In this document: positions 5,523-56,186 of the stretch, piece after piece
Layout: every line of letters begins with the position of its first letter
How positions within the stretch are numbered: the stretch's first letter is position 1
Assembly: GCF_001194135.2 (NCBI RefSeq)
Contig: NC_068998.1
Coordinates: 49,945,820-50,002,190, forward strand
Direction of reading: 5' to 3'
Length of the DNA: 56,371 nt
Source of the DNA: Octopus bimaculoides
Taxonomy: Eukaryota
Program-made: the position numbers and the translations under genes
Notes under the pieces: generated by a model
What the model saw: only the letters and a program-made list of their open reading frames with translations
What the model was told of the DNA's origin: nothing
Database searches by the model: none

Positions 5523-5565
<43 letters not shown>

Positions 5566-7623: not shown

Positions 7624-7667
<44 letters not shown>

Positions 7668-21643: not shown

Positions 21644-21677
<34 letters not shown>

Positions 21678-22638
21678 TATATATATGTATATATACCCGC
21701 ATATAATTGCATGTTAATGTTCATTTTTTATCAAGTTCTAATAGAAAGTATTTGAGATAATTCTGATAGGTCAGTCTATGCGCCTGAAGAGTATAAAAAT
21801 AATTATTCTTAATCCAGGAAGAATATTATTGCCACAAACTTCGTGGTTTCATCCGGTTAAGCTAACGTCGGGAGATTTTAACGTAGCTGAGAATACAAAA
21901 GGCGATGATTAACTTCAATGCATGGCAGCCTAACTGCGGCTTGGTTCAGTGAAACATGAGAAATCTCTTGCACTACTGATATTTTATTATCCAATTCAAA
22001 AATTGTTTTGGAATATTCTTTCTGCGAGTTCTAAGATCCTTTCTCTATTGTTTGTTCTGTTTTACCTTCTCCATCAGAGGAAGCGCAATGGCACAGTGGT
22101 TAGGGCAGCGGATTCGTGGTCATAGGGTCGTTGTTTCGATTCCCAAACCGCGCGTTGTGAGTGTTTATTGAGCGAAAAGATTTATGCGTAATTAAGTTTC
22201 GTCTAAGCTTTTAATGAAGACATATATATATATATTTCGCCTGAATTTCTATCCGCTATTAAATTACGTTTGTATAATTTTGACCAGTTTCAAAATTCGA
22301 TGAAATATATTTTGCATGTATTTGATACTTACCAGCAGTTGTCGTGGTCGTTAACATAGTTTTTATACTCTTTCGCACACGTTTCTTGCGCCAAAACTAA
22401 ACAGTTTTTCTCTACCTCGGACTCTGATGAAACTATACATACGAAAAATCGTGTATTATTTATGTTAATATTTCGTGTTAACAGAAATTCCTAGCAGAAA
22501 AGCGAGCAACTGCATTTGGTAGAAATTTAATTCCAGTTTGTAAGATATATTTCTCTGGACATACAGATATTAACTTCTCCATCCTACTTACAGACACATA
22601 CACACAGTCAGATACAGAAAAACACATCTGTTTCTCCT

Positions 22639-22705
<67 letters not shown>

Positions 22706-23130
22706 ACAGGCAGTTCAAGTGGTGTACAGTTATTTTATATTCAGGAAAAGAAGGCAGTCAGAATTTTGGATAATCCTTTCGTTGCGCTTTCGTTCGTTTA
22801 ACCGAAATCTTCAAGACGAGAATAATACCAAACTGATAAAAGCACAACCTTTCATTGTTCTTTTATATGAATTGGATGTATGTTTCTTTTGTTTAGAAAA
22901 TGTTTATGTATGTTTCTTTTGTTTAGAAATTTCTTATATGCGTATCATTATCTGTTTATATTTAGACAATTATTTAATTATACAATGAATAAATGCAAAC
23001 TAAAACCACATCGCTAATATTGAGATTGTTTGTTATACTATATAAACATCATTGCCTTTTTTATTAGTATGGAAAAATTCAGATACTTACCACATACAAG
23101 AATTAAAAGGAACAGAAAGATCTTCAACAT
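16232..23130 (-). CDS. Locus L3, complete model: exons 23130-23091, 22432-22333, 21283-21199, micro-exon 20498-20472 and/or 18552-18517, terminal exon 16288-16232
   Basis: In-frame splice gives MLKIFLFLLILVC-V-SSESEVEKNCLVLAQETCAKEYKNYVNDHDNC-W-VYQDFIQCFRKSTDPKCYSIFSKSHECF-[TERATKVYK and/or EKKSRSNSKRNE]-MTIQRMFLLGVVVTSLCY*. All junctions are GT-AG, and exon sizes 40/100/85/27(36)/57 match the paralogs. Confidence 0.8.
16398..18019 (+). mobile_element. Degenerate mariner copy D with a nested insertion (~16590-17230)
   Basis: Colinear with copy A; includes RLPTTDQKRARQITSPENLILLEADPVAF; interrupted at the ATAAATCA site. Confidence 0.8.
18830..19967 (+). mobile_element. Degenerate mariner copy E (5' end and central part deleted; nested insertion ~19025-19400)
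   Basis: Colinear with copy D; internal deletion near 19795; 3' TIR tttcagtcaatcctcgta. Confidence 0.75.
20576..20706. mobile_element. 131-bp Tc1/mariner-type MITE
   Basis: TIRs TACAGGGTGTCAACAAAGTCTGGGT / ACCCAGACCTTGTGGACACCCTGTA with TA ends. Confidence 0.8.
21335..21635 (-). mobile_element. SINE of a second family; a related 3' half lies at ~39565-39750 on +
   Basis: Reverse-strand B-box-like end (GTTCAGTCCC) and the tail GACTGAAACAAGTAAAAGAA, shared with 39565-39750. Confidence 0.55.
22075..22180 (+). mobile_element. tRNA-derived SINE head (truncated)
   Basis: About 85% similar by eye to 475-575. Confidence 0.75.
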
Positions 23131-23190
23131 GGTTTTGTCTCTTAACCACCGTGGTGTCTTGATAAAGAACTCTTCTAAATTGCTTATTTT

Positions 23191-23210
23191 TAATATAATG
23201 TAACATATGT
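23191..23210 (-). promoter_or_regulatory. Conserved proximal upstream motif ACATATGTTACATTATAT, with AT-rich TATA-like continuation, ~60-85 bp 5' of the ATG
   Basis: Recurs upstream of every exon 1 copy (~14176, ~15066, 23191, ~32128, ~38011, ~48167, ~49600, ~56257). Function is inferred only. Confidence 0.45.
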
Positions 23211-23419
23211 CTCTCCCCAGGATTGTTAATATTTGCAATCGTAAAGAATAAGATGCCGTAGTTTTAATAGAGTCAGCTAACATCATCTAAATTATAGCTC
23301 TAATCAGCAAGCTGTTCAACGCTACATACTATTAAACAATATATCAAGCTAATTCTGAGTCTTACTGAAATAAATTATCTATAAACATATTAGCCCCAAA
23401 ACACGTTATATATTTATGA

Positions 23420-27512: not shown

Positions 27513-30288
27513 TTAGTTTAGATACATTACAAGATTAACGCCAAAAAGAGGAAGGGATACTCTTTGAATGGTCATCTGAAAAGAGAATAATGCAGTCACG
27601 TTCGAAGTAATTGGATATGAATAATACAAGAATGTTACTGTTTTAAGAATGGTAGTCTCAGAACTTCAAAGGCATTCTTGCATTAATTTAAACGTTCCTT
27701 ATTAATTACTGTATTGCTTCTTTCACAAGTTGACTGATATCTATTTACAGAAACAACAAAAATAACTGTTCACAGAAACGTCAAAGATAACAACTACACA
27801 TGTTCGTGTTTAGCAGACGATTAACTATAAATCAAAGCCTCAATGATATTAAAATATCCCGTGAGAAAATTAAAAGTATTCTCCTCGCGGAAATTGGCAT
27901 GACGAGGATGTCTCCGACATCTGACACCTGACAATAAATACATCAGGTGGATCACGTCAAAGGGAAAACCTGATATTGTTTGAAGACGGTCCAGCAGTTT
28001 TCCTTGGATGTTAACTAACACTGCATGAGTGCTGTCTTTATCACTTTGAACTAGAGAAAACGGCACAATCTATGGAATAGGAACATCCCGACAAACCTAC
28101 ACCTAAGAAGACCAAAGTTGTTTGATTTGCAGGGAGGTTGATTGATGCTGACTATTGGGATGCAAAGTAACTGTGCTTATTGACTGCCTTCAAAACAGTC
28201 ATAATATCAAAGGAGAGTAGATGCCAATTTGCTGTTTTCTGGTGAAAATGCCTATTAACACATACCTCCCAGGGAAAATGACGGAATGATTTATGTTTCA
28301 GGAGTAAAATGGTCCAGCACAAACATCATTGTTTTCTATGGCTGCTGCGCTTTGAACTCGTCAATTACTCCATTTATTGTTCTGATGTGTACCCATGTGA
28401 CTATCATTGATTCTCTTACGAGAAAGAAAATGTGCTGGGATCATTTATCACACTGTTAATGAAGTGTTATCCGCTGTTGATGGAAGCAACAGGATTACAA
28501 CTACTTCATCAATGGAATCCAGGTTGGAAAGTGAGTGGACTGCAATGTTTCACAATACATTATAGTATTCAGTCTGTAAGCGTTTCAATATATCCTCCTA
28601 TATTCATCTTCATTAACTACTGTTGAGATTTACCACCAAATTTAGTGAACTAGTTCCTGATGGCGTTGAATTTGAAACCGAAATAAAAAAAAAAGATACC
28701 AGCAATTCAACGATGATATCTCAGGCCTGTCAGCTCAGTGTGGCGCAATATGACAAAGAGATACAGGTTCAAACTCCCAGAAGGGTTTGACTAATTCACC
28801 CATTGCTCTTTCAGTAATACGAAGTGTACAAGATATGAAGCAAAGAACTGGAGATCATAGAAACGTTCCACATTTTGCAGCAATTTTCCCTATTCAAAAG
28901 TAATTCTTTAATTCGTGTAAATATCATTAAATATTTCTCTCAGTTCAATAATGTAATATTAAAGGTAATATGAAGTTAGTGTATTCCTATTAGCGAGATA
29001 TCAGATTTCCGACAGTAATGGTATCTAGCACTGGTAGCATAAATTTGGCAGGGCAATAAATATATTTTGAAGGAGTAGTTATAATGGAATGACGTACCTC
29101 CTTTCCATTAAAATGGCATGATTTCTGTAAACCAAATAAAATGTATTTCTTGAAAATATATCCAACAAATTAGTATTTTTTTATGTTGTCACATACATGA
29201 ATTCAAACATACAATGTTCATAATAAAGATGATTTAATATACTCTAAGTGAAATTATCAGCTGTATGAATCTATTTTAACGTAGTAATCACTCAGCGATC
29301 TGTGTTTCTGATAAAATATAACCTATTGCCACTTATTAGTTTGTTTACAAATGTTTTGAAGATAGGTTCCGAGGTATAATAAAGATTTGTGTTTGTCAAA
29401 AGAATTCAGTTCTCGTTATCAATGTAGAAATGCTTCTAATTCATACTTAAGTATTCCAATTTCGCTGGTCAGAATTAAAATTGAACAGACAGACTCGTTG
29501 CAAGCTAAAAGTACAGTTTAGAAAATGACTTTTAATTCTAAGGACCATCGGAACCAAACAGGTAATATAGTTATAACAACACACTTACTATACAAGAACT
29601 GTTCGATTCAAAAAGTTCATGACACACGGGATAGATAGAATGACGAAAGCACTCAAGGAACATATCAAACAACCTGCAAATGAAATGTGAGATGGGAATT
29701 CCGAAGGTACATCCATACATATATTCATATATATATATATATACATAAATATCTGTACAAAAATCCACACACACAAATACACACGCATATATATATATAT
29801 ATACGTGTGCTTGTTTGTGCGTGAGTGTGTGTGAGTGTGTTTGTGTCAATGATGGTTCTCTACTCTTTATGCAGAATGTGACGATCTCTTACACTTATAC
29901 CTAAGATCTATCATGGGGTCTAATGCGACCTTTTAAATCAATGTCTCACATAAATTACATTTCTGTTTGGCACGGTTAGATCTGTACTTAAGATCTGATT
30001 TTGTGTACCTAAAAATGAGTTACCGAGCCTCCGTTCAATTGGCAGACATTATGATGTAAAAGGCATTGAAAGGAAGGCTCAGATAAATAGTCGCATTATT
30101 TAGTAGAAGTTTGTTTGTCATTGGTCCGCAAATAAGATTCATGTTAATACTTATCCAGTCCTTACAGATCTTTTTAACTTTAACACTGATAACGTTGTAA
30201 TCCTATGGATAACTTCCTGTTGACCTACCAGACTCCTCTATGCAGTCTCTGGGCCATTATTATTTACGGTCGAAAGAAAACACACACA

Positions 30289-30320
<32 letters not shown>

Positions 30321-31711
30321 NNNNNNNNNNNNNNNNNNNNNNNNNNNNNNNNNNNNNNNNNNNNNNNNNNNNNNNNNNNNNNNNNNNNNNNNNNNNNNNN
30401 NNNNNNNNNNNNNNNNNNNNNNNNNNNNNNNNNNNNNNNNNNNNNNNNNNNNNNNNNNNNNNNNNNNNNNNNNNNNNNNNNNNNNNNNNNNNNNNNNNNN
30501 NNNNNNNNNNNNNNNNNNNNNNNNNNNNNNNNNNNNNNNNNNNNNNNNNNNNNNNNNNNNNNNNNNNNNNNNNNNNNNNNNNNNNNNNNNNNNNNNNNNN
30601 NNNNNNNNNNNNNNNNNNNNNNNNNNNNNNNNNNNNNNNNNNNNNNNNNNNNNNNNNNNNNNNNNNNNNNNNNNNNNNNNNNNNNNNNNNNNNNNNNNNN
30701 NNNNNNNNNNNNNNNNNNNNNNNNNNNNNNNNNNNNNNNNNNNNNNNNNNNNNNNNNNNNNNNNNNNNNNNNNNNNNNNNNNNNNNNNNNNNNNNNTATA
30801 TATATACATAAATATATATATATATACATATTAATATAATATATACAGAGAGAAATAGAGAGATGTATAAAAAGAAAGCAGAAATATCGACATACAAACA
30901 TCAAATTACTAAAACAATATCAATTCCTAACAATATCAAATGCATAGAAGCTAGAATTGTATGTGTGTGTACGTGTGTGTGTGTGTGTTTATGTGTGTGT
31001 TTATGTGTGTGTTTTTTTTCTTGTGTGTGTTTGTATTGCCTATAATTTCGTCTCCGTGAGATTACAATGTGCGTGATTAAAATTACATGTGCATTTTTAT
31101 GTAAATTTGTTAATTTCAAGTTTGCAGTAAATATATTAATTTGCAGATATTTGATACTCACCTGCATTCCTTTCTCCTGTGTCCATATTCTTCAAATTCC
31201 TTTGGACACTCCTCTTTCGCTACTTTTATGCATTCTTTCTCAATGGTGCTGGTCGATGAAACTATACATACAAAAATTTATTTACAATTCATAAAACCCC
31301 CTAAATACTTATTTTGGGGTTTAGAATTAACCGAATTTCCTAGCAGAAAAGAGAGCAAGTTCATTTCATAGATATTTTATTCCAGTTAAAATGAAATATT
31401 TATATGAAAACACTGATATTTAAATTCACTCTTCTATTTAGAGAAAGGCAGACACACATATAAACACATACATACACACAGACACATCAAACCCAAACAT
31501 ATATGTGTGTCTTTGCACGCGTGTGTGTGTATGTGTGTGTGTGTGTGTGTGTGTGTNNNNNNNNNNAAATAATATATATTTGAAGAAACACAACGAACAT
31601 TTATTAGGTTATAGCAGTACGTATTAATAATAATAAGAAGAAGACGAAGAAGAAGACGAAGAAGAAGACGAAGAAATCGAAGAAGAAGTAGAAGAAGAAG
31701 AAGAAGATCAT

Positions 31712-37394: not shown

Positions 37395-37941
37395 TAAATA
37401 TACATAGATACACACACGCTCGTATATGTATATATATAAATTTATATATATATATAACTAATTTAGAGACAACCCACTACTCTACAACTCAGCCAACCAA
37501 GAACCCGTCCAATGCTGTGAAGCACATACCATGGTATAATGTGTCATATAAAACATATTTTACTCTTAGTGTTGTTGAGAAAAGTTTATATTTTTAAAGT
37601 TGTTTCGTGTTAAAATTGTCGTATTTCGGTAATTTCAACCAATCACTGACGTCTATTGAGGTGAAAACAATTACTGCTGTGGATTGTAAAAAACACGTTT
37701 TTACGGTGTAATGGGAACTTTTCCCTTGAATAAAATTAGTGCCGTTGTTTATCAACAACAACTATCGGCGGTACTGTTATTTATGACTTCGTTCGTGCGT
37801 TTGTAGTAGTTTTAGCTCTAAGGTTTTAGAGTTAGGGTTAGGGTTAGGGTTTTAGGGTTTGATATTATCATATCAATTAGGGAAATAGTAATAATGATAC
37901 TTACTAATTAAGAGAACAAAAATAAAAGCTGAAATTTTCAT
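36584..37941 (-). CDS. Locus L5, 5' half only: exon 1 37941-37905, exon 2 36683-36584; intact downstream exons not found (possible pseudogene)
   Basis: MKISAFIFVLLI-S-VSTCSILGWCEGFSAFNCPDKPTLKSGASPVY-R. Exon 2 is exactly 100 nt, phase 1-2, with C10/C18 kept and C32 replaced by Y (TAC). Confidence 0.6.
37061..37342. repeat. Near-perfect foldback with (CA)n-(TA)n-(TG)n core, in L5 intron 1
   Basis: TAATTGACATCCAGTACACTTTGTTTGGAAAGTG at the left end mirrors CACTTTCCAAACAAGGTGTACTGGATGTCAATTA at the right. Confidence 0.85.
37832..37857 (+). repeat. Short interstitial (TTAGGG)n
   Basis: Three tandem TTAGGG units plus one more. Confidence 0.6.
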
Positions 37942-41108: not shown

Positions 41109-44100
41109 TTAGATTTGCATTAGTACATTAACGACAAGTACAGTAAGGAATAGTGTTTGCATGGGCCTCTGAAAAGAGAATAGTAAACATTATATCGATA
41201 ACAATCTGTATACATATATATGGAAAGTAATTGGATATGAAGTTAGTGTTTATTTCAAATCTAACGTGGGTTTTCTGAAAGAAATAACGATACTGCAATT
41301 TTAACCCTAGGAAGGAATAACAATTCTGCTGCCTTGACCCCAGACTAACCGCGATTGTAATATATATAGAAAATACAATGTCACACAATTACTGACTTTT
41401 CAGTTTCTCCGTTAGAAAACCTTTCTTCCTGAGAGAACCAGTATACGAAGAATAAAAGGTAACAATTATCACCACTTTAGATGCGAATGATACAAAACTT
41501 CACTGTTTAAACGACGGTGTGCTTAACTACGAAGAAGTAACGCGGGAACTTGAAATCTCGAATGCATTAATTACAACTCTATTTATCGATAACTATATTG
41601 ATTCTTTGCAGGTCAATTGACATCTGACTGTTAAACTAAAACTTCAAAAACTATCTAGGAGCAACCTCTCCTATTGAAAATTAAGAGAATTTGGCATTGT
41701 GATGTAATGAATTTGGTTCTCGGTGGCCAACGTATTAAAACTATGACGATGGAATCACTACTACTCTACTTTTAGTACAATGGGAGGTCGAAATATGCAG
41801 ATTTTATTAAACTTATTTTCAAAATATTTACAGGGTTTCCCGAATTCAAGGCAGCCGATAAATCGGGCTTTAATGATTACCAATAAATATGATAAGATAT
41901 GAAAACTATATATCATTGTAAAAGCTTCTTGTGTGTTCATTTTGTTTCATACTGCATATATACAGATTTACAAATTTGATAATTGCTAGAGATAAAAATA
42001 CAATTATAACCCTCCACAGATTAGGCGAATTTAATACAGAGATTGCAAATAGAAATTAAAATCAAACTAACAACACACCCCAAAATTGCCAAGGAATATC
42101 AAGAGGCTGGTTCCACCAGGGTTCAAACTGGACGTGGCCAAATAAGAATTGTGTGGACCTCTCAGATTATACTGCGAACTCCTAGGAATTCCTTCAAACA
42201 TTTGGCTGCCAAGTGAAATATAAGCAGAACATCAATATATCGGGTGCTGAGGAGCAGCTGAGGTCCCATCCCTACAAGATGATCCACCGTCATAGCATAT
42301 ACAGATTTATAAGGGTATATGGCAGCAATGAAACGGTCTTATCTTGCACGCTGCGTAACTTGATGTTCACTGATGCAAAGAAATATGATATCCAATAGAC
42401 AGTAAGGTACCAGAATGACTGACTTTAAGGATATCTCGCTCTGGCAAGACGAAATTCGTAAATGGCAGACAAACTACACTGCCAGTTATGGTTTTGGCGG
42501 CTGTGAGAACCAGTGGAATGTTGCCCCTCGTTTCTCTGCTGTCGGGTGTTCGAATTAATATCCAACGAGAGATTTCCGACATTCTGTAATATGAAACCTA
42601 TCAATGGCTGGATGAATACTTCTAATGCACACCTTCCAGCCTTCAACAAAACACGGCACCGTCACATATCTCCACACAGACACAACACTGGTTTCAGAAA
42701 AAAACATTCCATCGTTCCTTATCAAGGACGTATATCCATCATGATGATCCGAACTCATCCCGTTGGATTTTTCTGTTTGGTCCAATTCAGAGATGAGGCT
42801 CACGTGCAAACCACATGTTTTGCTCGACGCCTTGGAGGCCATACTGCACCAGACATTTTCTTCGTTTCCGTAACAGTAACTGCGTACCGCGGGTAAAGTA
42901 TTCGCACTTAGACTTAAACCCGTTATTCGAGACAGATGCGCTTATATCAACTAAATGTTGCTGTGTCATAATTGTTTTTCATTCACCACTGCATTACAAT
43001 GCAAGTAACGGAAATATAGCATTTTTCGCTAGGGCGTTCCGCCGAGGTCCTCTTTGCCGTTTCCTTTAGAGGGTCAATAAATTAAGTACCAGTTGCATAA
43101 TGTGGTCGACCTAATTAACTAGCCCATTCTCCCAAAATTGGAGCCTTGTGCCTAGAGTACAAAAGAATATTTCGCTTGGACAAAATAAAAAAAAAATGGA
43201 TGAATGAAATTTAGGGCACCCTGTTTTTATATTCTAGCTGGTAGCATAACTATTGTAGTAACATATATGTTCTCGAAGTATTAGCTACAATGAAATCACC
43301 TACCTCGGCATTGTTAGACTTGTTTTTTCTGAAAAATTCAAAAGTTTTCAAATGCTAAAATATATCAGGCAATTTCTGTGCACACATACGCAGTAATGAG
43401 GTATTAATTCTATCATACAAGGAATGTTATAAAATTTATGATTAATATACTTTTTAGTTAATTTATTATTCATTGAAAATTTTAGCTGTATGAACGTGTC
43501 TTATCATATAAATCTTGTTTCGGGTATCAGGTACAGAGTTAATGAAATATAGAGAACGTTCTGCCGTAACGTTTTGGTTGCATTTAAAATCAGATACATG
43601 CAACATCGAATTAGAAAGTAACTTACTTGACATTTCTTCATTTTTTTAAACAAATGTTGACAATCACGATGCATGTCTGGAAGATAACACTCGTCGAAAA
43701 CTTCGGCAGAACTGTAAATGGAAGTTAACGTGGAAATTATTCAGCGGCTATTGTAGTACATGTAATGTTGCTTATATATATATGTATATATATATATATN
43801 NNNNNNNNNNNNNNNNNNNNNNNNNNNNNNNNNNNNNNNNNNNNNNNNNNNNNNNNNNNNNNNNNNNNNNNNNNNNNNNNNNNNNNNNNNNNNNNNNNNN
43901 NNNNNNNNNNNNNNNNNNNNNNNNNNNNNNNNNNNNNNNNNNNNNNNNNNNNNNNNNNNNNNNNNNNNNNNNNNNNNNNNNNNNNNNNNNNNNNNNNNNN
44001 NNNNNNNNNNNNNNNNNNNNNNNNNNNNNNNNNNNNNNNNNNNNNNNNNNNNNNNNNNNNNNNNNNNNNNNNNNNNNNNNNNNNNNNNNNNNNNNNNNNN

Positions 44101-44324
44101 NNNNNNNNNNNNNNNNNNNNNNNNNNNNNNNNNNNNNNNNNNNNNNNNNNNNNNNNNNNNNNNNNNNNNNNNNNNNNNNNNNNNNNNNNNNNNNNNNNNN
44201 NNNNNNNNNNNNNNNNNNNNNNNNNNNNNNNNNNNNNNNNNNNNNNNNNNNNNNNNNNNNNNNNNNNNNNNNNNNNNNNNNNNNNNNNNNNNNNNNNNNT
44301 ATATATATATGGATAGATAGATAC

Positions 44325-44361
<37 letters not shown>

Positions 44362-44856
44362 CATACATATACACAAACGCACAAAATATGGGGGTTTAGT
44401 TCACCGGTGGACTGTGAACTTTATTTTCCTGTCTATATTCTTCTAGCTAATTTTACTCTTTGTCCTTCTATTTTATTTCTAATAAACTGTAAATGTCCCT
44501 GCCTAGAACTTTCGTGCATACTTTGTCTCTGATGACAGAAAACCCAGTGTGCGGACAATTTAGCCTATCATATGGGATATACCAGAAACAGCTGTAAAAT
44601 TTCAAATTCACCTTACCCTATTGGAATTATGGTAACCGGCGTCAGATACACGCCTAGCCTTTGTTTCTCTTATCCTTTATCCTCTATAGTAATGTATCCC
44701 TAATAATACGGAAGCTTAATACGGATCCCTATTTCCAGAATCAGCTGTGCACTTGGAACCTAGATGAGGACTAAATATAGCACGTAATTAGCGTAACTTT
44801 TCGTTTAGATGACCACTGACTAAATCCCTCGTATTCTTCTCTCTCTCTCTCTCTCA

Positions 44857-44897
<41 letters not shown>

Positions 44898-44901
44898 CCC
44901 C

Positions 44902-44948
<47 letters not shown>

Positions 44949-47515
44949 TTCCCGTAAAAATGTTTCTCGTAAAAAATGTAAGATATATATATATATCTTA
45001 AATTTTTTAGGGGAAACATTTTGAATATGCAAATAATTATACTATTCCATTACCCTTCTACAGTCTAATAATGCTTAACGGTGAACCAATCTTTTGGGGT
45101 TCCATCAAGCTGTATCGATAGAATAAAGGGTAGATGTAGTAATAATATCAAAATTCGGGATGGAACTTTTAGACATTTAAGGCATCATTATGCGTGTTTC
45201 CACAAAACACATGTGTCTTCAGATCACAAATTCCAGAAAGGTTTCTGAAATTTGGAAGAAAAATATATTTCAAAACTGAATAGCATCAACTCCCTTAGTA
45301 TACTCTAGATTCAAACACAAATAAATAAACCAACCAACCAATGTGTAGAATGCTCTAAACCACACCACTATACTGCAAGAAACATGTAAAAGGTCACTCT
45401 GAGAATGTGTCATTGTTCAATTGAGACACTAATCTCCACCAGTTGATCGATTTAGTGGCTGTACTAGATCACCAGTTTACTTCAGACTTCATTACAGATA
45501 GACATGACTTAAATAAGATTTGGACAAAGGAATGTAAACATACTTGATATCTGAACACTGAATAGTAATATAAGTGAAACGTCACATCACCCACCTCCAT
45601 CCCAAAGTAACTACCATACTTTGTTGTACAACCATCACGTCTCTCTCCTCTCAACAAAATACACACAGGAACACCCATGTAACTCACTCAAACATCGCGC
45701 TGGACAAAAAGCGTTGAAATATTTCTGTGTGTAAACAATCCACCGGTTCTTCATTTTGATGGAAAGCTTAATGTTGGTGGAAAAGGCTTGAACTCCGACT
45801 TTCGTCAAACGATGAAACACAGTCTTTCGAGACACTTTCATTCCATAATGACTGAAACAATCTATTAATGACAGCCTTAGGATCACACGGTTTTACCAAA
45901 CACCTGTTTTTCCGTGGTTTTCCCAGTTTTTCTAATGACACAAACGACCTTGTTTCATCACTGCGGTATATATGCACATACATTCTGATTCCATGATGAA
46001 TTTCAAATTACAAGATACAATTTTAAGAGAAGCGGTGGCACAGCAGTAACATCGCTGGTAACTATCGTACATTTTCAAAAATTGATCTAGTATATTATTT
46101 CAACCATTTATTTATTTCATACCTACTGGCAGACCGGGTCTGAATTTGTATGAATTCGATAAGTCTCGGGACAACCAATTTTCGCTAACTTATCACAATT
46201 TTGTTTCAAGTCGAAAGTTGATACAGCTAGGATGAGAAAAAATACGTTTTTCAATCATGCAGTTACGTAGATCTTTATTGTAAATTAGCGATTTAAATAG
46301 AATCGGTTTCAGACATTCTCTTCAATTTACATTCATATACATATGTGCGTTTGTTTGTGTGTGTGTATATGTGTGTGTGTTTGTGTGTGTGCGTGTATAT
46401 ATATNNNNNNNNNNNNNNNNNNNNNNNNNNNNNNNNNNNNNNNNNNNNNNNNNNNNNNNNNNNNNNNNNNNNNNNNNNNNNNNNNNNNNNNNNNNNNNNN
46501 NNNNNNNNNNNNNNNNNNNNNNTATATATATATATATATGTAACAGGATATCATGTAGTAAGGCAGTACGACCGTTTCAAGCAGCTCCGTGAATTGAACA
46601 ATGCAATCATTACGTAACTTTAAATACAATTCTATCTTGAGCTGCACAAAATGTAGAACTTTTTAACAAGCAGAACACATTAAATGGAGCCGCTTGAAAC
46701 AGTCGTGCTCCATTACTACTTGATATCCTGTTGCTTAATTTGATTTTATTCACCTTCATTGGAGCTGTGTGGATAATACCGGACTGGCTTGGTGCTTCAA
46801 CTACACGTGTGCTTCTGAAAACCTCATATATTAATTAACCTGCTCAGCGTATCGAGAACACTATATTGGTCAAACTGAAAACATTTTACGACCGCGTAAG
46901 ACGGCACATAGATCCCAAATTAAAATACGAGAATACAGTAAATAGGGTTAAGCAAGCACATCAATATTTGCTCCATTAACAAGCCAACAGTAGCCTGTAT
47001 AAATTCAGGGACAAATCAACCTGTAATCAGCACATTAGTAAAGAAGCATATCTATAAGCGATCCCGCTATTCGGTAAATATGTATTCACTAGCAACCGCG
47101 GCTCTTCTTACAGCTGAATCCTTTTAACAAATTTCATCCATGCAATAACACATGCCTTCAGTTGACGCCCTTCGATTGAACCAAATATAGTTTGCCGTAA
47201 ACAGGTATGGTGACATTTTCACCATTCTTCTTCCAAATGACGGTATCTTTTAGAGGGGACACTGATTTTATGTAGCTAGTAGCTATTGTTCTTCTCCAAT
47301 ACTTCCATTGTATGTAATATCCAATTTCCAAAGCAAAGTTTCTAGAGGCGCAGGAAGATATTATTTTTATCTTGTGGAGAAAGATGTCGAAATGACATTG
47401 TGCGGTGAGTGCAGGTTGTGGTTCTAATTGAAGTCGCGAATCATACATGCATACATACACTCATATATTTGCATGCATCTATATATATACATACATACAC
47501 ACACACACACACACG

Positions 47516-47546
<31 letters not shown>

Positions 47547-47855
47547 NNNNNNNNNNGGTGAGTGCAGGTTGTGGTTCTAATTGAAGTCGCGAATCATACA
47601 TGCATACATACACTCATATATTTGCATGCATCTATATATATACATACATATGCCCAGACGAGGCTGGCCAATTTGGAGTATTAACGAGTATAACCAGCCG
47701 AAATTGCAAAGATAATTTGGATCTCGACTGATGAAATAACACAAATCCGAATGGCCTGTCCTGGTTTTCTTTGTATCGTCTGTCTGGATGGTTTATTGAC
47801 AATTTTTTGTACCATCTAACTGTCTGGATGTTTTGCGTTCTTGTCCCATTTTTTT

Positions 47856-47927
<72 letters not shown>

Positions 47928-48096
47928 TGAATTATTGGTTAATTGATAAGAAGATAATATATATGTCTCTAGATTTGTATTTTGGGTGAGTGGAACACAG
48001 AGGTATATACTAGTTGATATTGTTATATCAACTAGTAAGCGAATAACTCTGATTCTTACCGTTTAAGAGAACAAATATAAACGCAGAAATTTTCAT
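41109..48096 (-). CDS. Locus L6: exons 48096-48060, 46226-46127, 43711-43627, micro-exon 43328-43304 (25 nt, frameshifted), terminal exon 41168-41109
   Basis: MKISAFIFVLLN-A-VSTFDLKQNCDKLAKIGCPETYRIHTNSDPVC-H-SAEVFDECYLPDMHRDCQHLFKKMKKCQ, then KKQV* as assembled, or KNKSNNAE-RPMQTLFLTVLVVNVLMQI* if one A is removed. Exon sizes 37/100/85. Confidence 0.8.
41831..43223 (+). mobile_element. DD37D-like transposon, decayed, in intron 4 of L6
   Basis: CAGGGT..ACCCTG ends; N-terminal RYQEAGST..NISRTSIYRVL; MVLAAV; DTAPSHIST.TQHWF; C-terminal remnants. Confidence 0.7.
46541..46733. mobile_element. MITE with ~45-bp imperfect TIRs; related half-copies at ~24480-24600 and ~32705-32830
   Basis: AACAGGATATCATGTAGTAAGGCAGTACGACCGTTTCAAGCAGCTCC ... 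GGAGCCGCTTGAAACAGTCGTGCTCCATTACTACTTGATATCCTGTT. Confidence 0.7.
46800..47060 (+). mobile_element. Penelope-like element GIY-YIG endonuclease fragment
   Basis: ENLIY*LTCSAYREHYIGQTENILRPRKTAHRSQI matches the PLE NLIYxIxCxxCxExYIGQT...R..H motif. Confidence 0.7.
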
Positions 48097-49239
48097 TGTT
48101 ATTTTGTCTCTTCACCACCGGTTATTTTTGATAACGCAGTCTTCAGGTCGGTTTATTTTATAAGAAAATATAATGTAACATCTGTTGCGCTCCGGATATG
48201 CATGGCAATGTGTATTCCTCAAGCTGAAATATTATTTCTGCACGTCAGCTGTTTAGAATGTATAAGGATAAAAAGAATCGCCTTTATTGAGTTTCTTTTC
48301 TAAAATAGGTGATATTAAATAGAATGTTAATGCTTGGCTTGCATTAATTTCGTAATAAATCACCTCCAGTGCAAACTCAGACACGGAGACATACACACAA
48401 CAGATATTCTTTCTCCATTTCATTTCTCCACAATTTCTCTCTCTATGTTTGTGATTTTGCACCAATTATGCAATTTGTACTGTTTCTTGAGTATATTTAA
48501 TGCCTAATCGAGATTGAATCCGCTATCGTCGCAACTGAATGCGGCACGATCAGAACATCTATTGTCATCTTCGCTTTTGTTCAATGTCTAATTTATTGCT
48601 TTCTATTTTCACAAACATATGACAGTAGTGTATGGCGTTTTATTATCTGTAATGTTTGTCCTATGTGTACCGCTATTAGTCCTTTTGATTTTGTACGGTT
48701 CCTCCAACATACTCACTCGCAATGATATTGCTAGGTGGGTTGGTTTAAATCTCGACTGCCTACATATCATTAAAATATGTTTACATATGATTTTCTTTTT
48801 ATTTTGCATATAAACATGTATTAGAAATCATTAGCAAGGAAAACAAATTCTCCTCAAAGAGGTGTTGTGAACACAACAATTGTTCTTTATATAAATATAT
48901 TAATATTATCTTGGTTGAAAAAACTTCGATAATGTAAATATGTTAATAGTTACCAGGGTAGCAAAAATCACACAAAAACTGAGATATCATTCCCGGCTAA
49001 TGGGTAGAAATTCCATGTTAAAATGATGTATCTTGAGTAGATATGAAGACTAATAATAAATGAGGCAAAACGCGTATACTCAATAAGTTCCTTTAATCCC
49101 TACATATGTTTCAAAATTTATGTCCACTCTACTCCAAAGAAGTGAGAGGTGCTGGAATATGCACATAAATTTATCGTCAAGGAACCATCTTACAAAAGCA
49201 AGACATGCGCTAAATGCTAAGGTTGCGTACGAGTAATAA

Positions 49240-49307
49240 CACTATCTACACACATGCACTATCTACACACATGCACTATCTACACACATGCACTATCTAC
49301 ACACATG
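49240..49307 (+). repeat. 17-bp minisatellite x4 (CACTATCTACACACATG)
   Basis: Four exact tandem units. Confidence 0.9.
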
Positions 49308-49495
49308 CGCGCACACAAACACACACACATATATATTGAATTATTGGTTAATCGATAGACAAATATATAGATTTACGCAGATGAATTTTGATAAATAGAG
49401 ATTTATATAAGCTTTCATTTTCGCTGAGTGGAAAACAGAAATATATTGAACGCTTTTGACATATAAAGCAGTAAGACAGAAATTGTGATCTTTAC

Positions 49496-49532
49496 TAATT
49501 AAGAGAACAAAAATAAACGCAGAAATCTTTTT
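49496..49532 (-). pseudogene. Duplicated, inactivated exon 1 upstream of L6 (start codon position reads AAA)
   Basis: KISAFIFVLLI|gtaaag is homologous to 48060-48096 and 37905-37941, but ATG is replaced by AAA. The nearest upstream ATG is out of frame. Confidence 0.65.
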
Positions 49533-50214
49533 TTGTGATTTTGTCTCTTCATCACCGGTGTATTTTGATGCATAAATCCCAAGATGGTTTATTTTTATAT
49601 GAAATAAAATTCACCATCTGTTGCACCCCTTATATTCATTGACATTCATTACTATGAACGCTCTAAATGTGTGTTTAAATGTTAGAATATTGTTTTGGCA
49701 CGTCAATTATTTGGAATTTATAAGTATTAGGAGAAACGTTTATTTTCCTTTTATAGGGCTTTACTGCTAAAATATTTATGAGATTAAATAAAATGATGTT
49801 GCCCAGATGGTATTAACTTCATAATAAAACAAGCCCCATGCAAAAAGGGACACGATGACTTTCGCACAATATATATTCTTTCTTCATTTTATTCTTCTAC
49901 AATTTCTTATTTTAGGTTTGTGAGCTTACGCCAATTATGCAATTAGTAACGTTACTTGAGTACTTGTAATGCTTAAAGGAAATCGATGACGTGATCAGAC
50001 TTTTTTATACAATACTTTACAGAGAAATTAATGTGTTGGATCGCATAATCTAGACTTTGTGGGTTATTTATTTTTTCATGCACTTACATCTATTCCATAT
50101 ATATTTCACCAAACCTCCATAGGAATCTGAAAATCTGGTTAGTTTGTTGCAGTATATTTAAATATGCACATATTAAAGACAATGATCTTTTCTACAATAG
50201 AATGAAATTTAGTT

Positions 50215-50560
50215 GTGTAGATTGACCCCATGGTCTCACTGGTACTTAATTCATCATTTCCGAAAAGATGAAAGGTAAAGTTGACTTCGGTGGATTCTGA
50301 ACACAGAACGTAGTGACAGGCAAACTAATCCTAAGCATTTCGTCCACCGAGCTAACGATGCTCACCGTTTTAGATTAACTCTAGACACAAGGTCCGAAAC
50401 GTTTGGAGAGGTGGCCAGTCGATTAGATCGACCCTTGTACGCAATTGCTACTTAATTTATCGATTCTGAAAGGGGGAAAGGCAAAGGCAACCTTGGCGGA
50501 ATTTGAACTGAGGACGTAGAAAGATAGTCAAAATACCGCTAAACATTTCATCTAATGTAA
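50215..50560. repeat. Two tandem units of a SINE-like interspersed repeat
   Basis: GGTACTTAATT..GAAAGG..AAAG..GAC.TCGG.GGA.TTGAAC occurs twice ~210 bp apart. Confidence 0.5.
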
Positions 50561-51309
50561 ATCGTGAACATTTGTGAATGTAGTTTCGCTACATATCCAT
50601 TCGAAACAGAACAAGTATGACATGCAATCAAGTACCAAGTACCAGACCTAGTACCTCTCACACTCCGTTTAGGTGCTCTGTACTTTTATGTTAAGCCGCC
50701 AATAAAATTGAGTATGTTCATATACAATGCGAAATATTTTTAAATGACAAAATAATTTTTCATTTATTAAAATGGTCGCTTCTTTTACTCAATTAAGGCC
50801 ACGCAAACTTTTCATAGCTAATACGTTCACAACATTATTCGTCGTAAGAAGCACATTGGTTTCAATCCAATTTAATCTAATGTTTTACTTTTCTCGTAAA
50901 ACATCTGAGATATCTTATTCAAATTCAGTTTCTCCTCTAATTCCTGATATTTATCTCACCTACGTTTCTTTATATTGAATACAAGCTCAGAGTACAGACA
51001 AAAGGATATACGTCCGACAGGTAGAGTACGGATTATGTGTTAATATTTGTGAGAAAATATCTAAGCTATTATTACCTCAAACATTATGCAAACATTCTCC
51101 TATTGAATTTGAAACCATTATTTCCAAAATTGTTATCTGCTGATATAGTTAGAATTATAATTTTTCAGAAAGTATAAAACAGAATAGCATTAGATTTCAG
51201 CGTTTAATTCCCCATCATTTTTACACCGCATCTCAAATACATATTAATGTAGAACCAATACAAATTACAGAATAACGGAGGTAAATCGGTATTACATCAT
51301 TATCTTCCT

Positions 51310-51465
51310 TTAGATTTGCATTAGTATATTAAAGGAAATTACAGTAAGGAATAGTGTTTCCACGGATCTCTGAAAAGAAAATAATAACAATTACATCAAT
51401 AAGACTCTATATACACACACACACAAACACACACACATACACACACACACACACANNNNNNNNNN

Positions 51466-51508
<43 letters not shown>

Positions 51509-54500
51509 ACAGGATTTGAAGGTAGTGTTTATCGCAACTGTAATGAGGGTTTTCCAAAGAAATAACGATTCTGCGGTTTTAACCCAAAGAGGGAAAAATT
51601 ATATTGCTATTTTAATTCATAGTTTAAGTCCTATTGCAATATACAGAATATACTGGATTATGCTGTTACTGACTATTTTTACTAGCAAACTACTCCTTTA
51701 GAAAAACTCTGTTCGAGATAGAATCAGTACATGTCGAAGGAGATGACCCTTTATCATAGCCTATGCAGTTTAAAGCCACTAAAATGCTGAGAAGCGGTTA
51801 AAATGCAGAGAAGCCTATTAAACTGAATATGAATGTCATTTGTGGTTTGGTCTACTCTAAGAAACACTGGAAGTTCTTCTCTCGTTTCTTTGCTCTCAGG
51901 TGTTAGAGTTAATATGCGTTGAGACATTTGGGAGATACTAGAAACTGTACTGCTCCCATGCGTGGATGCACACGTTCAAGGTGCAAGTTGGTGCCTCGAA
52001 CAGGACTGGACTTGTCACTATCATACAACTGCAGACACAAAACTGGATTCAGAAACAAAAAACTTTCCATCGTTCATGGTCAAGAATGTACGGCTCTTTG
52101 AATTTTTATATTTGGTCTATTTTAGAGAGGATGGTGACGAGCACTTTTCACGCTTCACCCGACGTTCTGAAGGCACGAGTGCACAAGAAATTTTCTTCGA
52201 CTTCGCAACAACAATTGCGTACCGCAATTGAAGCCTTCACGCTTAGAATTAAGGCTGTAATTCGAAACAGATGTGGTCATATTTCATAAATGTGTTCGTG
52301 TCATGACTATTTTGATTGACCGTTTCATTTCAATGCAAGATTCACCAAATATAACAATATTTCACTAGGGCACAATGCAAAAATTCAATTGACGGAATTT
52401 TAGGAAACTTAAGTATATATTCTGTGTGACAATTGTGGAGGGTCATCTTAGCTATTGCAGTTATATATATTCGTGAAACACCTACCTCGTCATTGTTAGA
52501 AGTGTTTTTCTGAAAAATTAAACATTGTCATATGTGAATACGAGACGTGTATAAGCGTTGTATGTGCAAGCATACACAGTAATGAGTAATGAGTAATTAC
52601 TTCAATTACACGAGGCTTATTATAAAAATATAATTAATATACATTTAATCAATTAATTATTAAAGTGAATGTTTTAGCTGTATAAACAAATCTTATCGTA
52701 GGAATCTTATTTCAGATATCGATGAAAAGATTTGATGTAATATAAAGAAAACATTCTGCTCTAAAGTTTTAAATACAGTTGTTCAAAAGTCAAATACATG
52801 CAACATAGAAATACAAAGTAACTTACAAAACATTTCCTGACTCCTATAAAGTAATTTCGACATTCGCGATACCTGTCTGGGTGAAAACAATCGTCGAAAA
52901 CTTTGTGAGCACTGCAAATGGAAGTTAATGTGGAAATTTAGAAAATAAATCATCGGCTATTGAAGTACGTGTGCGTTTGTTTGTGTGCTGAATTTTTACT
53001 CCATTTCTTGAACAGCTATTTAATCGTTACCTATGGAGTTATTTAACATAGACGCTTCTTTGAAGGATATACCTGTTCCACCTAATAACGTATATATTAA
53101 AGAACTTATCGGGAAGACACATTCATGTATTAACAGGATTCGTTGGAAGGCGTTTTTAATTTTTTTCGCCATGAACGGTTTGTGTTTTTAAACGGAGTGT
53201 ATTTTTTCTGATGTTATATCTGTTCCTGAATGATGTGTAAAGAAACCTTGATTTAAGCATCTTAATGAATTCTTTATACTGAAAAATATATATTGAAGAC
53301 GGTAAATATGTTCTTTTGAATTTATACGTTTTTGCGTCGTAACTCCTTTATTATTATTAATATTACCAAAAGGATCGATTCTTGAAGAGTCTGCATATCT
53401 TCACTGTCGTTTTTTTCTGCTATTTTGGTGATGATTTTTTAAGTTAGCTTACCACTTATTTTTGTTGGTAGTTAATTTATATATNNNNNNNNNNNNNNNN
53501 NNNNNNNNNNNNNNNNNNNNNNNNNNNNNNNNNNNNNNNNNNNNNNNNNNNNNNNNNNNNNNNNNNNNNNNNNNNNNNNNNNNNNNNNNNNNNNNNNNNN
53601 NNNNNNNNNNNNNNNNNNNNNNNNNNNNNNNNNNNNNNNNNNNNNNNNNNNNNNNNNNNNNNNNNNNNNNNNNNNNNNNNNNNNNNNNNNNNNNNNNNNN
53701 NNNNNNNNNNNNNNNNNNNNNNNNNNNNNNNNNNNNNNNNNNNNNNNNNNNNNNNNNNNNNNNNNNNNNNNNNNNNNNNNNNNNNNNNNNNNNNNNNNNN
53801 NNNNNNNNNNNNNNNNNNNNNNNNNNNNNNNNNNNNNNNNNNNNNNNNNNNNNNNNNNNNNNNNNNNNNNNNNNNNNNNNNNNNNNNNNNNNNNNNNNNN
53901 NNNNNNNNNNNNNNNNNNNNNNNNNNNNNNNNNNNNNNNNNNNNNNNNNNNNNNNNNNNNNNNNNNNNNNNNNNNNNNNNNNNNNNNNNNNNNNNNNNNT
54001 TCACAAAAAAAAGAACAGACGAAGACAGGTGGTGAAGAAAACAATAGATGTATTAGTATAACGCTCGGGAATTGAAAAAGTCTTTAACATTTCGAGCCTA
54101 CGCTCTTTAACAGAAAAGAAAACAGAAAGAAACAAGGAGAGAGAACAATGTGTGTAGTAATCAGCTATAAATTCTGCTCTAAAGATTTAGATATGTCAGG
54201 GTCCTGTACTGGCCAACGCTTTACGGGATTATTATCAGCTTCAAACATTCCCATTGCTAATTTAACACTGTGACATGGTTCATTATTCAGCATAAATATT
54301 GGCCGATGAGTTCGTTATGATATCACAACAGTAACAACATTCTTCACAATTATGTTTTTCTATATGACCGAATTCACATTACCATGGATCTCAATGAAAG
54401 CCCCAGAACCTACTGCAGAATCCCTTCTCCATATCATTAAACCCCAACTCTTACCGTTATTGATTTCTTCACACATTTAGGGAGCAATGTTTCCATTTTC

Positions 54501-56186
54501 AGACGTCTCACGTATTGTCTATTACTGGAGCCAACCAAATTGAACATATATCCGTCACTGAAGAACACAAACCACCAGTTGTCGTCCGTCCAAAGTATTC
54601 GCTCATTGGCAAGAATTTCCTACAACAATCCTGAATCGATCGTTAAGCGAAAGCCTCTGAATTACACGGTCTCACCACGCGCTCGTTTTCTGTGGTGTCC
54701 CCCTACATATTCCTCATAACACAAACAAGCTTGTTTCTTCATAATGCTTGAGAGTTCTTGAAACAAAACTATGTGATCAGTTAATGTCTCTAATGAAATC
54801 AGAAAGTGCTATCCAGTTTTTCTTCAGTGTGACTTCTCGGATCCTGAGACTTTCAGCAACTTTACGTGGCTTTCTATTATTGTCAGTTCACAACTGTACC
54901 CTATTAATCTTTGCACAGATCAGGCAACTAAGTATACAAAGTTCAGAGTGTTGTCAGTTACTTTATTTTGAAATCCGCATCATACGTTCTCTAATTTTCT
55001 ACATCTTGTTATAATTTATATTTTTTCAAATAAACAGTTTCTCTATTATAAATTATTTAGTTATTAATCACTTCGTAAAAAAGATTATTGTAAATAATGA
55101 AACTAATTTAAGGTATTTACAGTAAAAATTACATTCGGAAAAACAGAAGTAGAAATCGAAATAACTTTAAACTTTATTTTCGTTCTCTAATTTGGCCAAC
55201 TACAGTATATATATACACGTACATTTTGATTCCATTTCGAANNNNNNNNNNNNNNNNNNNNNNNNNNNNNNNNNNNNNNNNNNNNNNNNNNNNNNNNNNN
55301 NNNNNNNNNNNNNNNNNNNNNNNNNNNNNNNNNNNNNNNNNNNNNNNNNNNNNNNNNNNNNNNNNNNNNNNNNNNNNNNNNNNNNNNNNNNNNNNNNNNN
55401 NNNNNNNNNNNNNNNNNNNNNNNNNNNNNNNNNNNNNNNNNNNNNNNNNNNNNNNNNNNNNNNNNNNNNNNNNNNNNNNNNNNNNNNNNNNNNNNNNNNN
55501 NNNNNNNNNNNNNNNCGGACAACTAATTCTCGCTATTACTTCACATTCTGATTTTATATCTGACGCTGATGCACCTGGGTTTTGAAAAGCCCGTTTATAA
55601 ATCAAAGCATTGAGATAGATATTTCATTTTATTTGATCTGTTTAAATTGAATCAATAGCGGAAAGGACAGCAGATGCCGTCTTACTTTACATATATATGT
55701 GTATGTGTGTATACATATATATACAAACAGTGTACTTTAGTAAATTGTTTCACTTTACTTCGCTCTACATAAATACTGAAAAACAGAAATACTTGACGAA
55801 GTATATACCAGCTCTCTATATTCGAAGTCCAAATCTCACGTGCCTGGAGAAAGCAGCGTGATACCACTCCAGTATTCATCCGAAGACTAGCCAATGTCGC
55901 CGAAATTACAGTAAGCAACTTGACGGAGTTGAGGAAAACTAAAAGACTTCTAATCTCGCAATGGGTACTTGTGTGTGTGTACTTTTTTGTTGAAATATTT
56001 GTTAATCGATACACAAAGAAATGGGTTTACAAACAAGAATAATGATAACTGGATACCTTGTTAAATTTGGACTTTCACTGTGTGGAGCACATAATCATAT
56101 TTGAAGTTATTGTCATATCAATTAGCAAGAGCATAATTGAGACACTTACCAATTAAGAGAAGCAGAATAAACGCAGTAATTTTCAT
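51310..56186 (-). CDS. Locus L7: exons 56186-56150, exon 2 55574-55516 (remainder in N gap), 52911-52827, micro-exon 52509-52486, terminal exon 51369-51310
   Basis: MKITAFILLLLI-G-ASASDIKSECEVIARISCP-[gap]-AHKVFDDCFHPDRYRECRNYFIGVRKCF-KNTSNNDE-RSVETLFLTVISFNILMQI*. All visible junctions are GT-AG. Confidence 0.78.
51880..52400 (+). mobile_element. DD37D-like fragment in intron 4 of L7, orthologous to 41831-43223
   Basis: Colinear with 42480-43070 and shares its flanks. Confidence 0.65.
54170..55205 (-). mobile_element. Tc1 (DD34E) transposon, decayed, in L7 intron 2
   Basis: ANERILWTDDNWWFVFFSDGYMFNLVGS..RQYVRR..LPKCVKKS; HGNVNSVI; IFMLNNEPCHS; WPVQDPD. TIR-like CTGTAGTTGGCCAAA at 55191-55205. 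Confidence 0.8.

Follow-up and report, generated by a model that had tools for sequence, protein, structure and literature searches.

Beta-defensins evolve by tandem birth and death, with a burst of replacements in the mature exon after duplication and slower change thereafter. The Ly6/uPAR (three-finger) proteins are small, Cys-rich and anchored by glycosylphosphatidylinositol (GPI); they are encoded in tandem clusters and have recognition roles including sperm–egg binding. Aplysia attractin, the Euplotes pheromones and the twin-Cx9C (CHCH) proteins are small, disulfide-rich and helical, and CHCH proteins, which carry two Cx9C motifs in a helix-turn-helix, lack a signal peptide and are imported into the intermembrane space of mitochondria. 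A conotoxin precursor consists of a signal, a pro-region and the mature toxin, typically encoded by one exon each, in three exons (PMC3862624). Here we analyse a family of small six-Cys genes in a stretch of 56,371 nucleotides from Octopus bimaculoides (the window), for which a preliminary description had proposed a conotoxin-like divergence pattern. In the youngest pair of copies the mature exons have outpaced the introns, the Cys scaffold of the family is conserved, and the ratio of nonsynonymous to synonymous substitution rates (dN/dS, omega) is about 1 over the long term.

With its gaps, the window matches CM046618.1 at about 49,945,820–50,002,190 in assembly GCA_001194135.2 with 100% identity. 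It consists of AT-rich animal DNA with 14 assembly gaps and belongs to an array of at least 14 small genes in tandem on one chromosome, which reaches out to about 50.148 Mb (further copies are located in loci L002–L004). All array genes treated here lie on the minus strand. The genes have 5–6 exons: a signal exon of 37–43 nt ending in phase 1, exon 2 of 100 nt, exon 3 of 85 nt, a linker mini-exon of 24–27 nt and a tail exon with a coding part of 60 nt including the stop codon. The precursor of about 100 amino acids comprises a signal peptide, a 61-residue six-Cys domain, a Ser/Asn-rich linker and a hydrophobic C-terminus of 13–18 residues; the precursor of copy L7 reads MKITAFILLLLIG-ASA/SDIKSECEVIARISCPKSYEDRKYMDPDCSAHKVFDDCFHPDRYRECRNYFIGVRKCF-KNTSNNDE-RSVETLFLTVISFNILMQI. 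The Cys pattern C-x7-C-x13-C-x8-C-x8-C-x9-C is split across exons 2 and 3. A HMMER search against 1.84 billion representative proteins gave 7 matches, all named 'uncharacterized' and all from O. bimaculoides (same chromosome) or O. vulgaris, and the relatives of the family are thus restricted to Octopus. L6 and L7 are unannotated, since a word-indexed search of about 15 billion proteins returned no counterpart of either. No relevant description of such an octopus family came up in literature searches.

A conserved signal and Cys scaffold with a variable remainder, as seen in the preliminary description, was borne out by the wider comparison. The six Cys are invariant in all copies, and between L7 and L8 the signal exon differs at 0/37 positions versus 21/138 in the mature exons. 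In 8 aligned proteins a Tyr and two Phe are invariant in addition to the Cys. A neutrally evolving sequence diverged by 26% would retain both an open reading frame and all six Cys with a probability of about 0.002, which is very unlikely; the scaffold is therefore under selection. Fits of site model M1a assigned 19–28% of codons to an omega of about 0.03–0.06.

L8 is the next tandem paralog, located 3.3 kb past the end of the window, and its L7-like exon 3 is found in public DNA and RNA runs. An allelic nature of this second L7-like exon 3 was rejected, as it is fixed with the same differences in contigs of 4/4 O. bimaculoides DNA runs and has its own position past the window. The L8 exon 3 that was rebuilt from variant tables equals the assembled sequence exactly. 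L7 and L8 form the youngest pair. Their coding parts differ at 0/37 positions in exon 1, 11/85 in exon 3, 1/24 in the linker exon and 1/60 in the coding part of the tail exon, and at 10/53 in the first 53 nt of L8 exon 2, which were recovered from contigs, the remainder lying in a gap. For the non-coding parts the counts are 4/185 (5′ flank), 15/180 (intron 1), 8/73 (intron 2), 15/317 (intron 3), 23/285 (intron 4) and 23/408 (3′ untranslated region, UTR). The mature exons (21/138, 15.2%) are significantly more diverged than non-coding DNA (65/1040, 6.25%; p = 0.0007) and than the signal, linker and tail exons (2/121, 1.7%; p = 1e-4). Nonsynonymous sites, with 17/110 differences, also exceed non-coding DNA (p = 0.0013). 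All 21 exon differences fall into 13 codons with an altered amino acid, and no silent change is found in the 32 conserved codons.

Two further data sets show the same tendency. In a sister species (organism B) two versions of exon 3 are 21/85 apart, with flanks differing at no more than 2/71 positions (p = 7e-5). For 8 exon 3 sequences, a set in which the deep branches are saturated, model M0 gave an omega of 1.14, and M2a was favoured over M1a (likelihood ratio test statistic, LRT, 12.9; p = 0.0016) with omega2 = 4.2 on 68% of sites; the highest LRT among 20 data sets simulated under M1a was 3.6. The 5 close exon 3 sequences yielded an omega of 1.93 (p = 0.19 versus 1), with p = 0.14 for M2a and p = 0.024 for M8 compared to M8a. 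Diversifying selection, which the preliminary description had inferred from L6 and L7, is not seen in that pair itself; L7–L8, the sister-species exon 3 and the M2a fit to 8 sequences make the pattern plausible and give it partial support.

The reading towards which we lean is that the array evolves by birth and death and encodes disulfide-stapled helical proteins, either secreted or displayed on the surface, whose exposed residues change at the neutral rate or faster, most visibly soon after a duplication. The product would be a disulfide-stapled helical protein on the cell surface, with L6 released after loss of its tail by a 1-nt frameshift. Birth and death of genes in the array would supply copies, and purifying selection would act on the signal peptide, the tail, the six Cys and the core residues Ala14, Tyr22, Phe38 and Phe54. 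Exposed residues would be free to change and, soon after duplication, would be driven to change by a co-evolving partner. A more specific proposal, which we consider doubtful, is an Octopus-specific system of cell-surface recognition (gamete, self/non-self or chemotactile), built on a GPI-anchored, undescribed six-Cys helical fold with post-duplication diversification and decoys. Selection would then have diversified the exposed face, possibly together with exon-limited exchange between neighbours, soluble decoys like L6 would result from tail loss, and the proteins would have their role in one tissue with very high expression. If the selection signal is true, the family would be a cephalopod case of a conserved signal and Cys framework with a hypervariable surface, a combination that marks co-evolving interfaces in venom, immunity and fertilisation.

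A number of observations weigh against selection for replacement, and many of them fit a neutral alternative that is possible but clearly less probable, in which the mature domain, except for its six Cys and a small number of core residues, drifts under relaxed constraint, with birth and death of copies and no positive selection. The L6–L7 counts of the preliminary description were reproduced exactly. Exon 3 (43627–43711 in L6, 52827–52911 in L7), with 3 Cys and the AG/GT sites retained in both copies, differs at 25/85 nt; replacements affect 17/28 codons, 10 codons are unchanged and one carries a synonymous change (CGT/CGC). The signal exons differ at 7/37 and the tail exons (41109–41168 vs 51310–51369) at 9/60 positions, and L3 and L4 share 13/32 residues in exon 2 and 9/28 in exon 3. 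The claim that L6 and L7 changed almost only at nonsynonymous sites as a special pattern nevertheless does not go beyond chance. Nei–Gojobori counting assigns 14.2 synonymous and 69.8 nonsynonymous sites to exon 3, and because just 17% of its sites are synonymous, 4.2 of the 25 changes are expected to be so, versus 3.0 found after resolving multi-hit codons (binomial p = 0.37). For all 61 mature codons the synonymous count is at the neutral expectation (11.5 counted, 11.6 expected). Few synonymous changes in a hand count of a 28-codon exon are alone no indicator of selection. The dN/dS values for exon 3, exon 2 and all 61 codons were 1.64, 0.74 and 1.02 by Nei–Gojobori and 1.89, 0.76 and 1.10 by maximum likelihood, and none of the latter is distinguishable from 1 (p = 0.43, 0.63 and 0.82). 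Intron 3, aligned end to end, differs at 77/296 positions (26%) and is as diverged as exon 3 with its 29% (p = 0.58); the signal exon compared to the mature exons (7/37 vs 64/185) gave p = 0.08. In the four complete window paralogs, about 20% of codons have an omega of about 0.03–0.06 and about 80% one of 1–1.5; M0 gave 0.84 and M2a was not significant over M1a (LRT 2.06, p = 0.36). Another old pair, LOC128249941 and its neighbour at a different place in the cluster, differs by 22% in exons and 25% in introns. An omega not above 1 and introns as diverged as exons had been named beforehand as outcomes that would speak against selection, and L6–L7 shows essentially both; positive selection is not demonstrated for this pair.

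Decaying copies fit drift as well: L5 lacks the third Cys, the L2 donor is AT in place of GT, a relic exon 1 is present, and L6 has a frameshift. The L6 linker exon contains A6 where A5 is expected, and the sixth A is confirmed in mRNA by a 25-nt loose end. Because the exon is thus 25 instead of 24 nt long, the frame ends with KKQV and a stop, and the tail open reading frame (ORF) is not translated. L6 is expressed 20–40 times below L7, and no L6 counterpart at ≥80% identity was found in two sister species. Owing to these features part of the L6 divergence may be decay. L6 may represent either a soluble variant or a copy that starts to decay, and for this reason L6–L7 is weakened as a test of selection. 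An exon that evolves neutrally cannot diverge more than its introns, but the mature exons of L7–L8 diverged 2.4 times and their nonsynonymous sites alone 2.5 times as much as non-coding DNA. Exon 2 of L6–L7 (39%) also exceeds intron 3 (26%; p = 0.016), the sister-species versions of exon 3 are 25% apart between near-identical flanks, and M2a is significant with 8 sequences. Of the comparisons suggested in the preliminary description, the contrast of exons and introns thus favours selection in L7–L8 and not in exon 3 of L6–L7 or the LOC128249941 pair, and site models favour it in the 8-sequence exon 3 set and not in the four window paralogs. Other points against selection concern the tests themselves. 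Differences occur in clusters, with as many as 3 nt in one codon and 4 within 8 nt. Multinucleotide mutation or micro-conversion, which are known to inflate site-model tests, could have produced them, and both the clustered changes and possible exchange between paralogs violate the assumptions of the site models. The Nei–Gojobori dN/dS of L7–L8 is 0.98, as multi-hit codons add 'synonymous' steps. Since non-coding divergence between L7 and L8 is uneven (2–11% by segment), the Fisher p-values are optimistic. The codon-model program was written for the present analysis, and the sister-species exon 3 pair was rebuilt from contig variant tables, a method that recovered L8 exon 3 exactly. Furthermore, the expression evidence comes from a single RNA run, and the C-terminus was judged to be GPI-signal-like by eye only.

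The clustering leads to another explanation, which we rate as rather unlikely: that the pattern arose by exchange at exon scale or by clustered mutation, i.e. by conversion (including homogenisation of introns and flanks that spares the exons) or multinucleotide mutation, and not by stepwise selection. The 21/85 differences of the sister-species exon 3 versions lie in a graph bubble with identical flanks, for which point substitution is a poor explanation. A contig of RNA run X13 is L8-like at 52347–52635 and L7-like at 52678–52850, but may be an assembly-graph artefact. Apart from the clustering, the rate of synonymous steps in the L7–L8 exons (15.8%) is as raised as the nonsynonymous one, and B11 and L6 both have AAA AAA (KK) where L7 has ATA GGA. 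On the other hand, a tract from a paralog diverged by 25–30% would introduce silent differences too, but 21/21 differences between L7 and L8 are in replaced codons and the 32 codons in between show no difference, third positions included. The clusters are shorter than 10 nt, which is below the usual length of conversion tracts, and homogenisation of introns with escape of the exons would itself imply selection for exon diversity. Finally, mis-assembly around gaps could have produced paralogs or differences, or the 'exons' might not be genes. The window has 14 gaps, one of which cuts L7 exon 2 and one of which lies beside a duplicated overlap of 94 nt. This reading was tested and found no support, and we regard it as most improbable: exon 3 of L6 and L7, the L6 frameshift and the splice joints were recovered independently in RNA and DNA runs of further individuals, exon 3 of L7 and L8 is present and fixed in contigs of the 4/4 O. 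bimaculoides DNA runs examined and of the untyped run X4, and the L3 and L4 models correspond to RefSeq models.

For the encoded proteins, an AlphaFold2 model based on the 8-sequence alignment predicts an all-helical Cys domain with a predicted local distance difference test (pLDDT) score of 78–86, the linker and tail scoring below 50. A single-sequence model of XP_052830509.1 was too poor for use (pLDDT 51). A periodicity of hydrophobic residues close to 100 degrees is weakly consistent with helices. The predicted structure of the Cys domain is thus a small, disulfide-held bundle in which the helices are short. No family member matched Pfam at curated thresholds, and searches of the PDB by sequence, by profile and by fold (Foldseek) gave no relatives; the best scores for CHCH/CX9C were weak (E = 0.12–0.64, 10–13 bits with cut-offs of 26–27), as was that for TRIAP1 (E = 0.3). 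In all members a Ser/Asn-rich stretch is located 8–12 residues ahead of the hydrophobic end. GPI-anchored proteins have an N-terminal signal peptide and a C-terminal signal that combines small residues at the omega-site with a polar spacer and a hydrophobic end of 10–20 residues. Tails resembling GPI signals were recognised in L3, L4, L7, L8 and four more copies, e.g. ...NTSNNDE-RSVE-TLFLTVISFNILMQI and ...HSS-VVLSALAVTLLILNKVQV, so that the C-terminus looks like a signal for GPI attachment.

The gene models, their splicing and their expression are supported by RNA. Among the listed RNA runs of the species the exons were detected in X13 only, with word depths of 8,000–35,000 for L7 exons, a similar depth for L8 exon 3, and 470–900 for L6 compared to about 12–50 in L6 introns. 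Expression of L6 was not seen in the raw reads of three other RNA runs. Splice joints with GT..AG ends in X13 contigs connect exon 1 with exon 2 and exon 3 with the linker exon in L7, and exon 3 with the linker and tail exons in L6. L7 exon 1 (56150–56186, 37 nt, phase 1) encodes the start codon and the n/h-region of the signal peptide, MKITAFILLLLI; it has a GT donor, and the X13 joint is 55572/4 > 56148/50. The first 59 of the 100 nt of exon 2 (55516–55574; depth about 19,000–23,000 in X13 contigs) encode the end of the signal peptide with Cys1 and Cys2. The missing 41 nt were supplied by loose ends of RNA contigs, AAGAGTTATGAGGATCGTAAATACATGGAC and CCCGACTGCAG, resulting in an in-frame exon of 100 nt that ends in Cys3, as in the paralogs. 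Exon 3 (52827–52911, 85 nt, AHKVFDDCFHPDRYRECRNYFIGVRKCF) contributes Cys4–6; it is flanked by AG/GT sites, is covered by a spliced X13 contig of depth 8,000–35,000 and is joined to the linker mini-exon (52486–52509, 24 nt, KNTSNNDE; joint 52509 > 52827 and a loose end). The coding part of the tail exon (51310–51369, 60 nt including the stop, RSVETLFLTVISFNILMQI) was assigned by homology to the L6 tail exon, whose joint is seen in RNA. This tail is hydrophobic and GPI-signal-like, and the 3′ UTR continues to about 50900.

L6 exon 1 (48060–48096, 37 nt, MKISAFIFVLLN) was assigned from its sequence. For L6 exon 2 (46127–46226, 100 nt, VSTFDLKQNCDKLAKIGCPETYRIHTNSDPVC) the chosen segment is the sole candidate with AG/GT sites and the right phase, length and Cys pattern, and it is as long as exon 2 of L3 and L4. 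Exon 3 (85 nt, SAEVFDECYLPDMHRDCQHLFKKMKKCQ) exactly matches an X13 contig with a depth of 470–900 versus 12 in the intron. The joints 43328 > 43627 and 41168 > 43304 define the linker mini-exon (43304–43328) and connect it to the tail exon (41109–41168), in which RPMQTLFLTVLVVNVLMQI followed by a stop is an intact ORF only in the L7 frame, so that the exon is spliced into the mRNA out of frame. A conserved block at 45852–45960 (L6) and 54631–54741 (L7) was rejected as exon 2, because one or both copies contain stops in the needed frame and the position of L7 exon 2, at 55574, is given by RNA joints; the block, with 69% identity, lies within intron 2 of both genes and is non-coding in the gene frame. 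Likewise, a tail at 52310–52371 and 42976–43035 was dismissed owing to an immediate stop, low RNA depth and the lack of a joint, the real tail exons being at 51369 and 41168.

L7 exon 2 has a second X13 joint, of similar contig depth (3442 vs 3812), to a donor that lies at 56057, 93 nt 3′ of the usual one. The additional 93 nt that are kept in this way (56055–56150) contain an in-frame TGA, and this joint may reflect a non-productive isoform or be derived from L8. The mixed X13 contig spanning 52347–52850 carries 12 L8-specific bases at 52393–52635 and L7 bases from 52678 on; polymorphism was rejected for its 13 differences, 12/13 being L8 states, and it is either a haplotype from L7/L8 recombination or conversion, or a chimera of the assembly graph. 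Intron 4 holds a remnant of the C-terminus of a mariner/Tc1-like transposase in both L7 (52050–52300) and L6 (42700–42990), which is therefore older than their duplication. About 560 nt of L7 intron 4 (51688–52251) have no match in L8 in the L003 alignment. A high-copy repeat at 43000–43175, with an inverted copy at 50378–50501, is transcribed in every RNA run examined, at depths in the thousands in X13; other high-copy repeats at 53022–53605, 53898–54189 and 55650–55795 reach a contig depth of about 1e5 in sister-species DNA.

The compared range contains 4 gaps, all of them intronic and within microsatellites, and none touches a compared exon. Two lie in introns of L6 at 43800–44299 (intron 2, between (TA)n and (GATA)n) and 46405–46522 (intron 1, between (TG)n and (TA)n). 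The gap at 47547–47556 (10 N), also in L6 intron 1, is surrounded by an exact 94-nt repeat (47404–47497 = 47557–47650), probably an unmerged overlap of assembly or scaffolds. The fourth (51456–51465, 10 N) is located in a (CA)n run of L7 intron 4. Contigs from RNA and DNA of other individuals reproduced exon 3 with 0 differences for L6 and at most 1 mismatch over 90 nt (RNA) for L7. Outside the compared range, the final 41 nt of L7 exon 2 are lost to the gap at 55242–55515, and L8 exon 2 is likewise hit by a gap of 1528 N (locus L003, 17581–19108, past the window end). Because of these gaps the same exon is absent from the reference in the two youngest copies. L6, L7 and L8 are the highest-expressed or youngest copies examined, yet they are absent from the current annotation, and a highly expressed family is thus partly invisible in the reference.

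L3 and L4 correspond to annotated genes. L4 (LOC128249868, 27513–32063) encodes XP_052830372.1 of 105 amino acids, and our model, with exon 2 at 31162–31261, exon 3 at 29589–29673 and the tail exon starting at 27575, is identical to the RefSeq protein. L3 (LOC128249925, approximate outer limits 16232–23130), with exon 2 at 22333–22432, exon 3 at 21199–21283 and a tail exon starting at 16288, agrees with XP_052830509.1 except for a second linker exon of 36 nt at about 18517–18552, revealed by the RefSeq comparison. At the 5′ end of L3 (about 23130–23290) XP_052830509.1 begins at an upstream ATG that puts 52 residues before the signal peptide, and the start codon is therefore probably mis-annotated. 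Exon 2 of L5 (36584–36683; a further segment is at 37905–37941) ends in Tyr, without the third Cys, and no exon 3 of L5 was found; the L2 signal exon (about 14960–15000) has the altered donor mentioned above. Both copies are probable pseudogenes. A relic signal exon without ATG at 49490–49532, within promoter-like homology (49336–49725) to L5, L6 and L7, marks a dead paralog between L6 and L7. At 3430–8550, downstream of an exon 3 at 9077–9161, a tandem duplication of about 2.49 kb contains doubled linker exons (5041–5067, 7449–7475) and tail exons (starts at 3430 and 5920). A motif ACCG(C/G)GGTG.T.AAGAGAC is found 10–30 nt 5′ of the ATG in most paralogs (L1–L6; e.g. 48105–48125, 23140–23160) and is degraded in L7.

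Compared to the described systems, the octopus genes share with conotoxins the evolutionary pattern: small, secreted, Cys-rich multigene products with a conserved signal exon, a hypervariable mature exon and a retained Cys framework, and many changes per codon. Close copies of conotoxin genes also have introns that changed less than the mature exon, as is the case in L7–L8 and not in exon 3 of L6–L7 or in the LOC128249941 pair. The conotoxin-like character proposed in the preliminary description does not extend to gene structure, the hydrophobic tail or homology. The octopus genes have 5–6 exons without a pro-region, the mature domain spreads over two exons and is followed by linker and tail exons, and the product is a domain of 61 amino acids that is predicted to be helical, whereas the conotoxin is a knot of 10–35 amino acids. 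Long-term omega is about 1, in contrast to values well above 1 in conotoxins, and neither by sequence nor by Pfam does the family resemble a known toxin family; it is not a member of the conotoxin superfamily.

With Ly6/uPAR the family has in common a signal peptide on exon 1, a Cys domain split over the next exons, tandem clusters, fast evolution, a putative C-terminal GPI signal, and members that would be either soluble or anchored. Nevertheless it does not belong to Ly6/uPAR, having six Cys and no CC pair in place of 8–10 Cys with CCxxxxCN, no match to Pfam PF00021 or PF00087, and an all-alpha AlphaFold2 model instead of a beta three-finger fold. Attractin, the Euplotes pheromones and CHCH proteins resemble it in size (about 40–60 amino acids), six Cys, helices with Cys pairs 8–10 residues apart and rapid divergence, but the Cys spacing differs and Foldseek returned no PDB relative. 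With its Cx8C/Cx9C spacing, its cleavable signal peptide and its sub-threshold scores, it is not a CHCH (twin-Cx9C) protein family. The mammalian beta-defensin clusters and other taxon-restricted Cys-rich families likewise show a tandem array, a conserved signal exon, a six-Cys scaffold and a post-duplication burst. Beta-defensins differ in fold and Cys spacing, have two exons and no hydrophobic tail and show no homology, and the octopus genes are not among them. Among the features of taxon-restricted diversifying families, restriction to Octopus, a tandem array and a conserved scaffold were found, and significance for an omega above 1 was reached with the 8 exon 3 sequences and with L7–L8 nonsynonymous sites versus introns, and not with data from the window only. 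The family is Octopus-restricted and belongs with the fast-evolving, secreted, Cys-rich tandem families that are already known as a kind.

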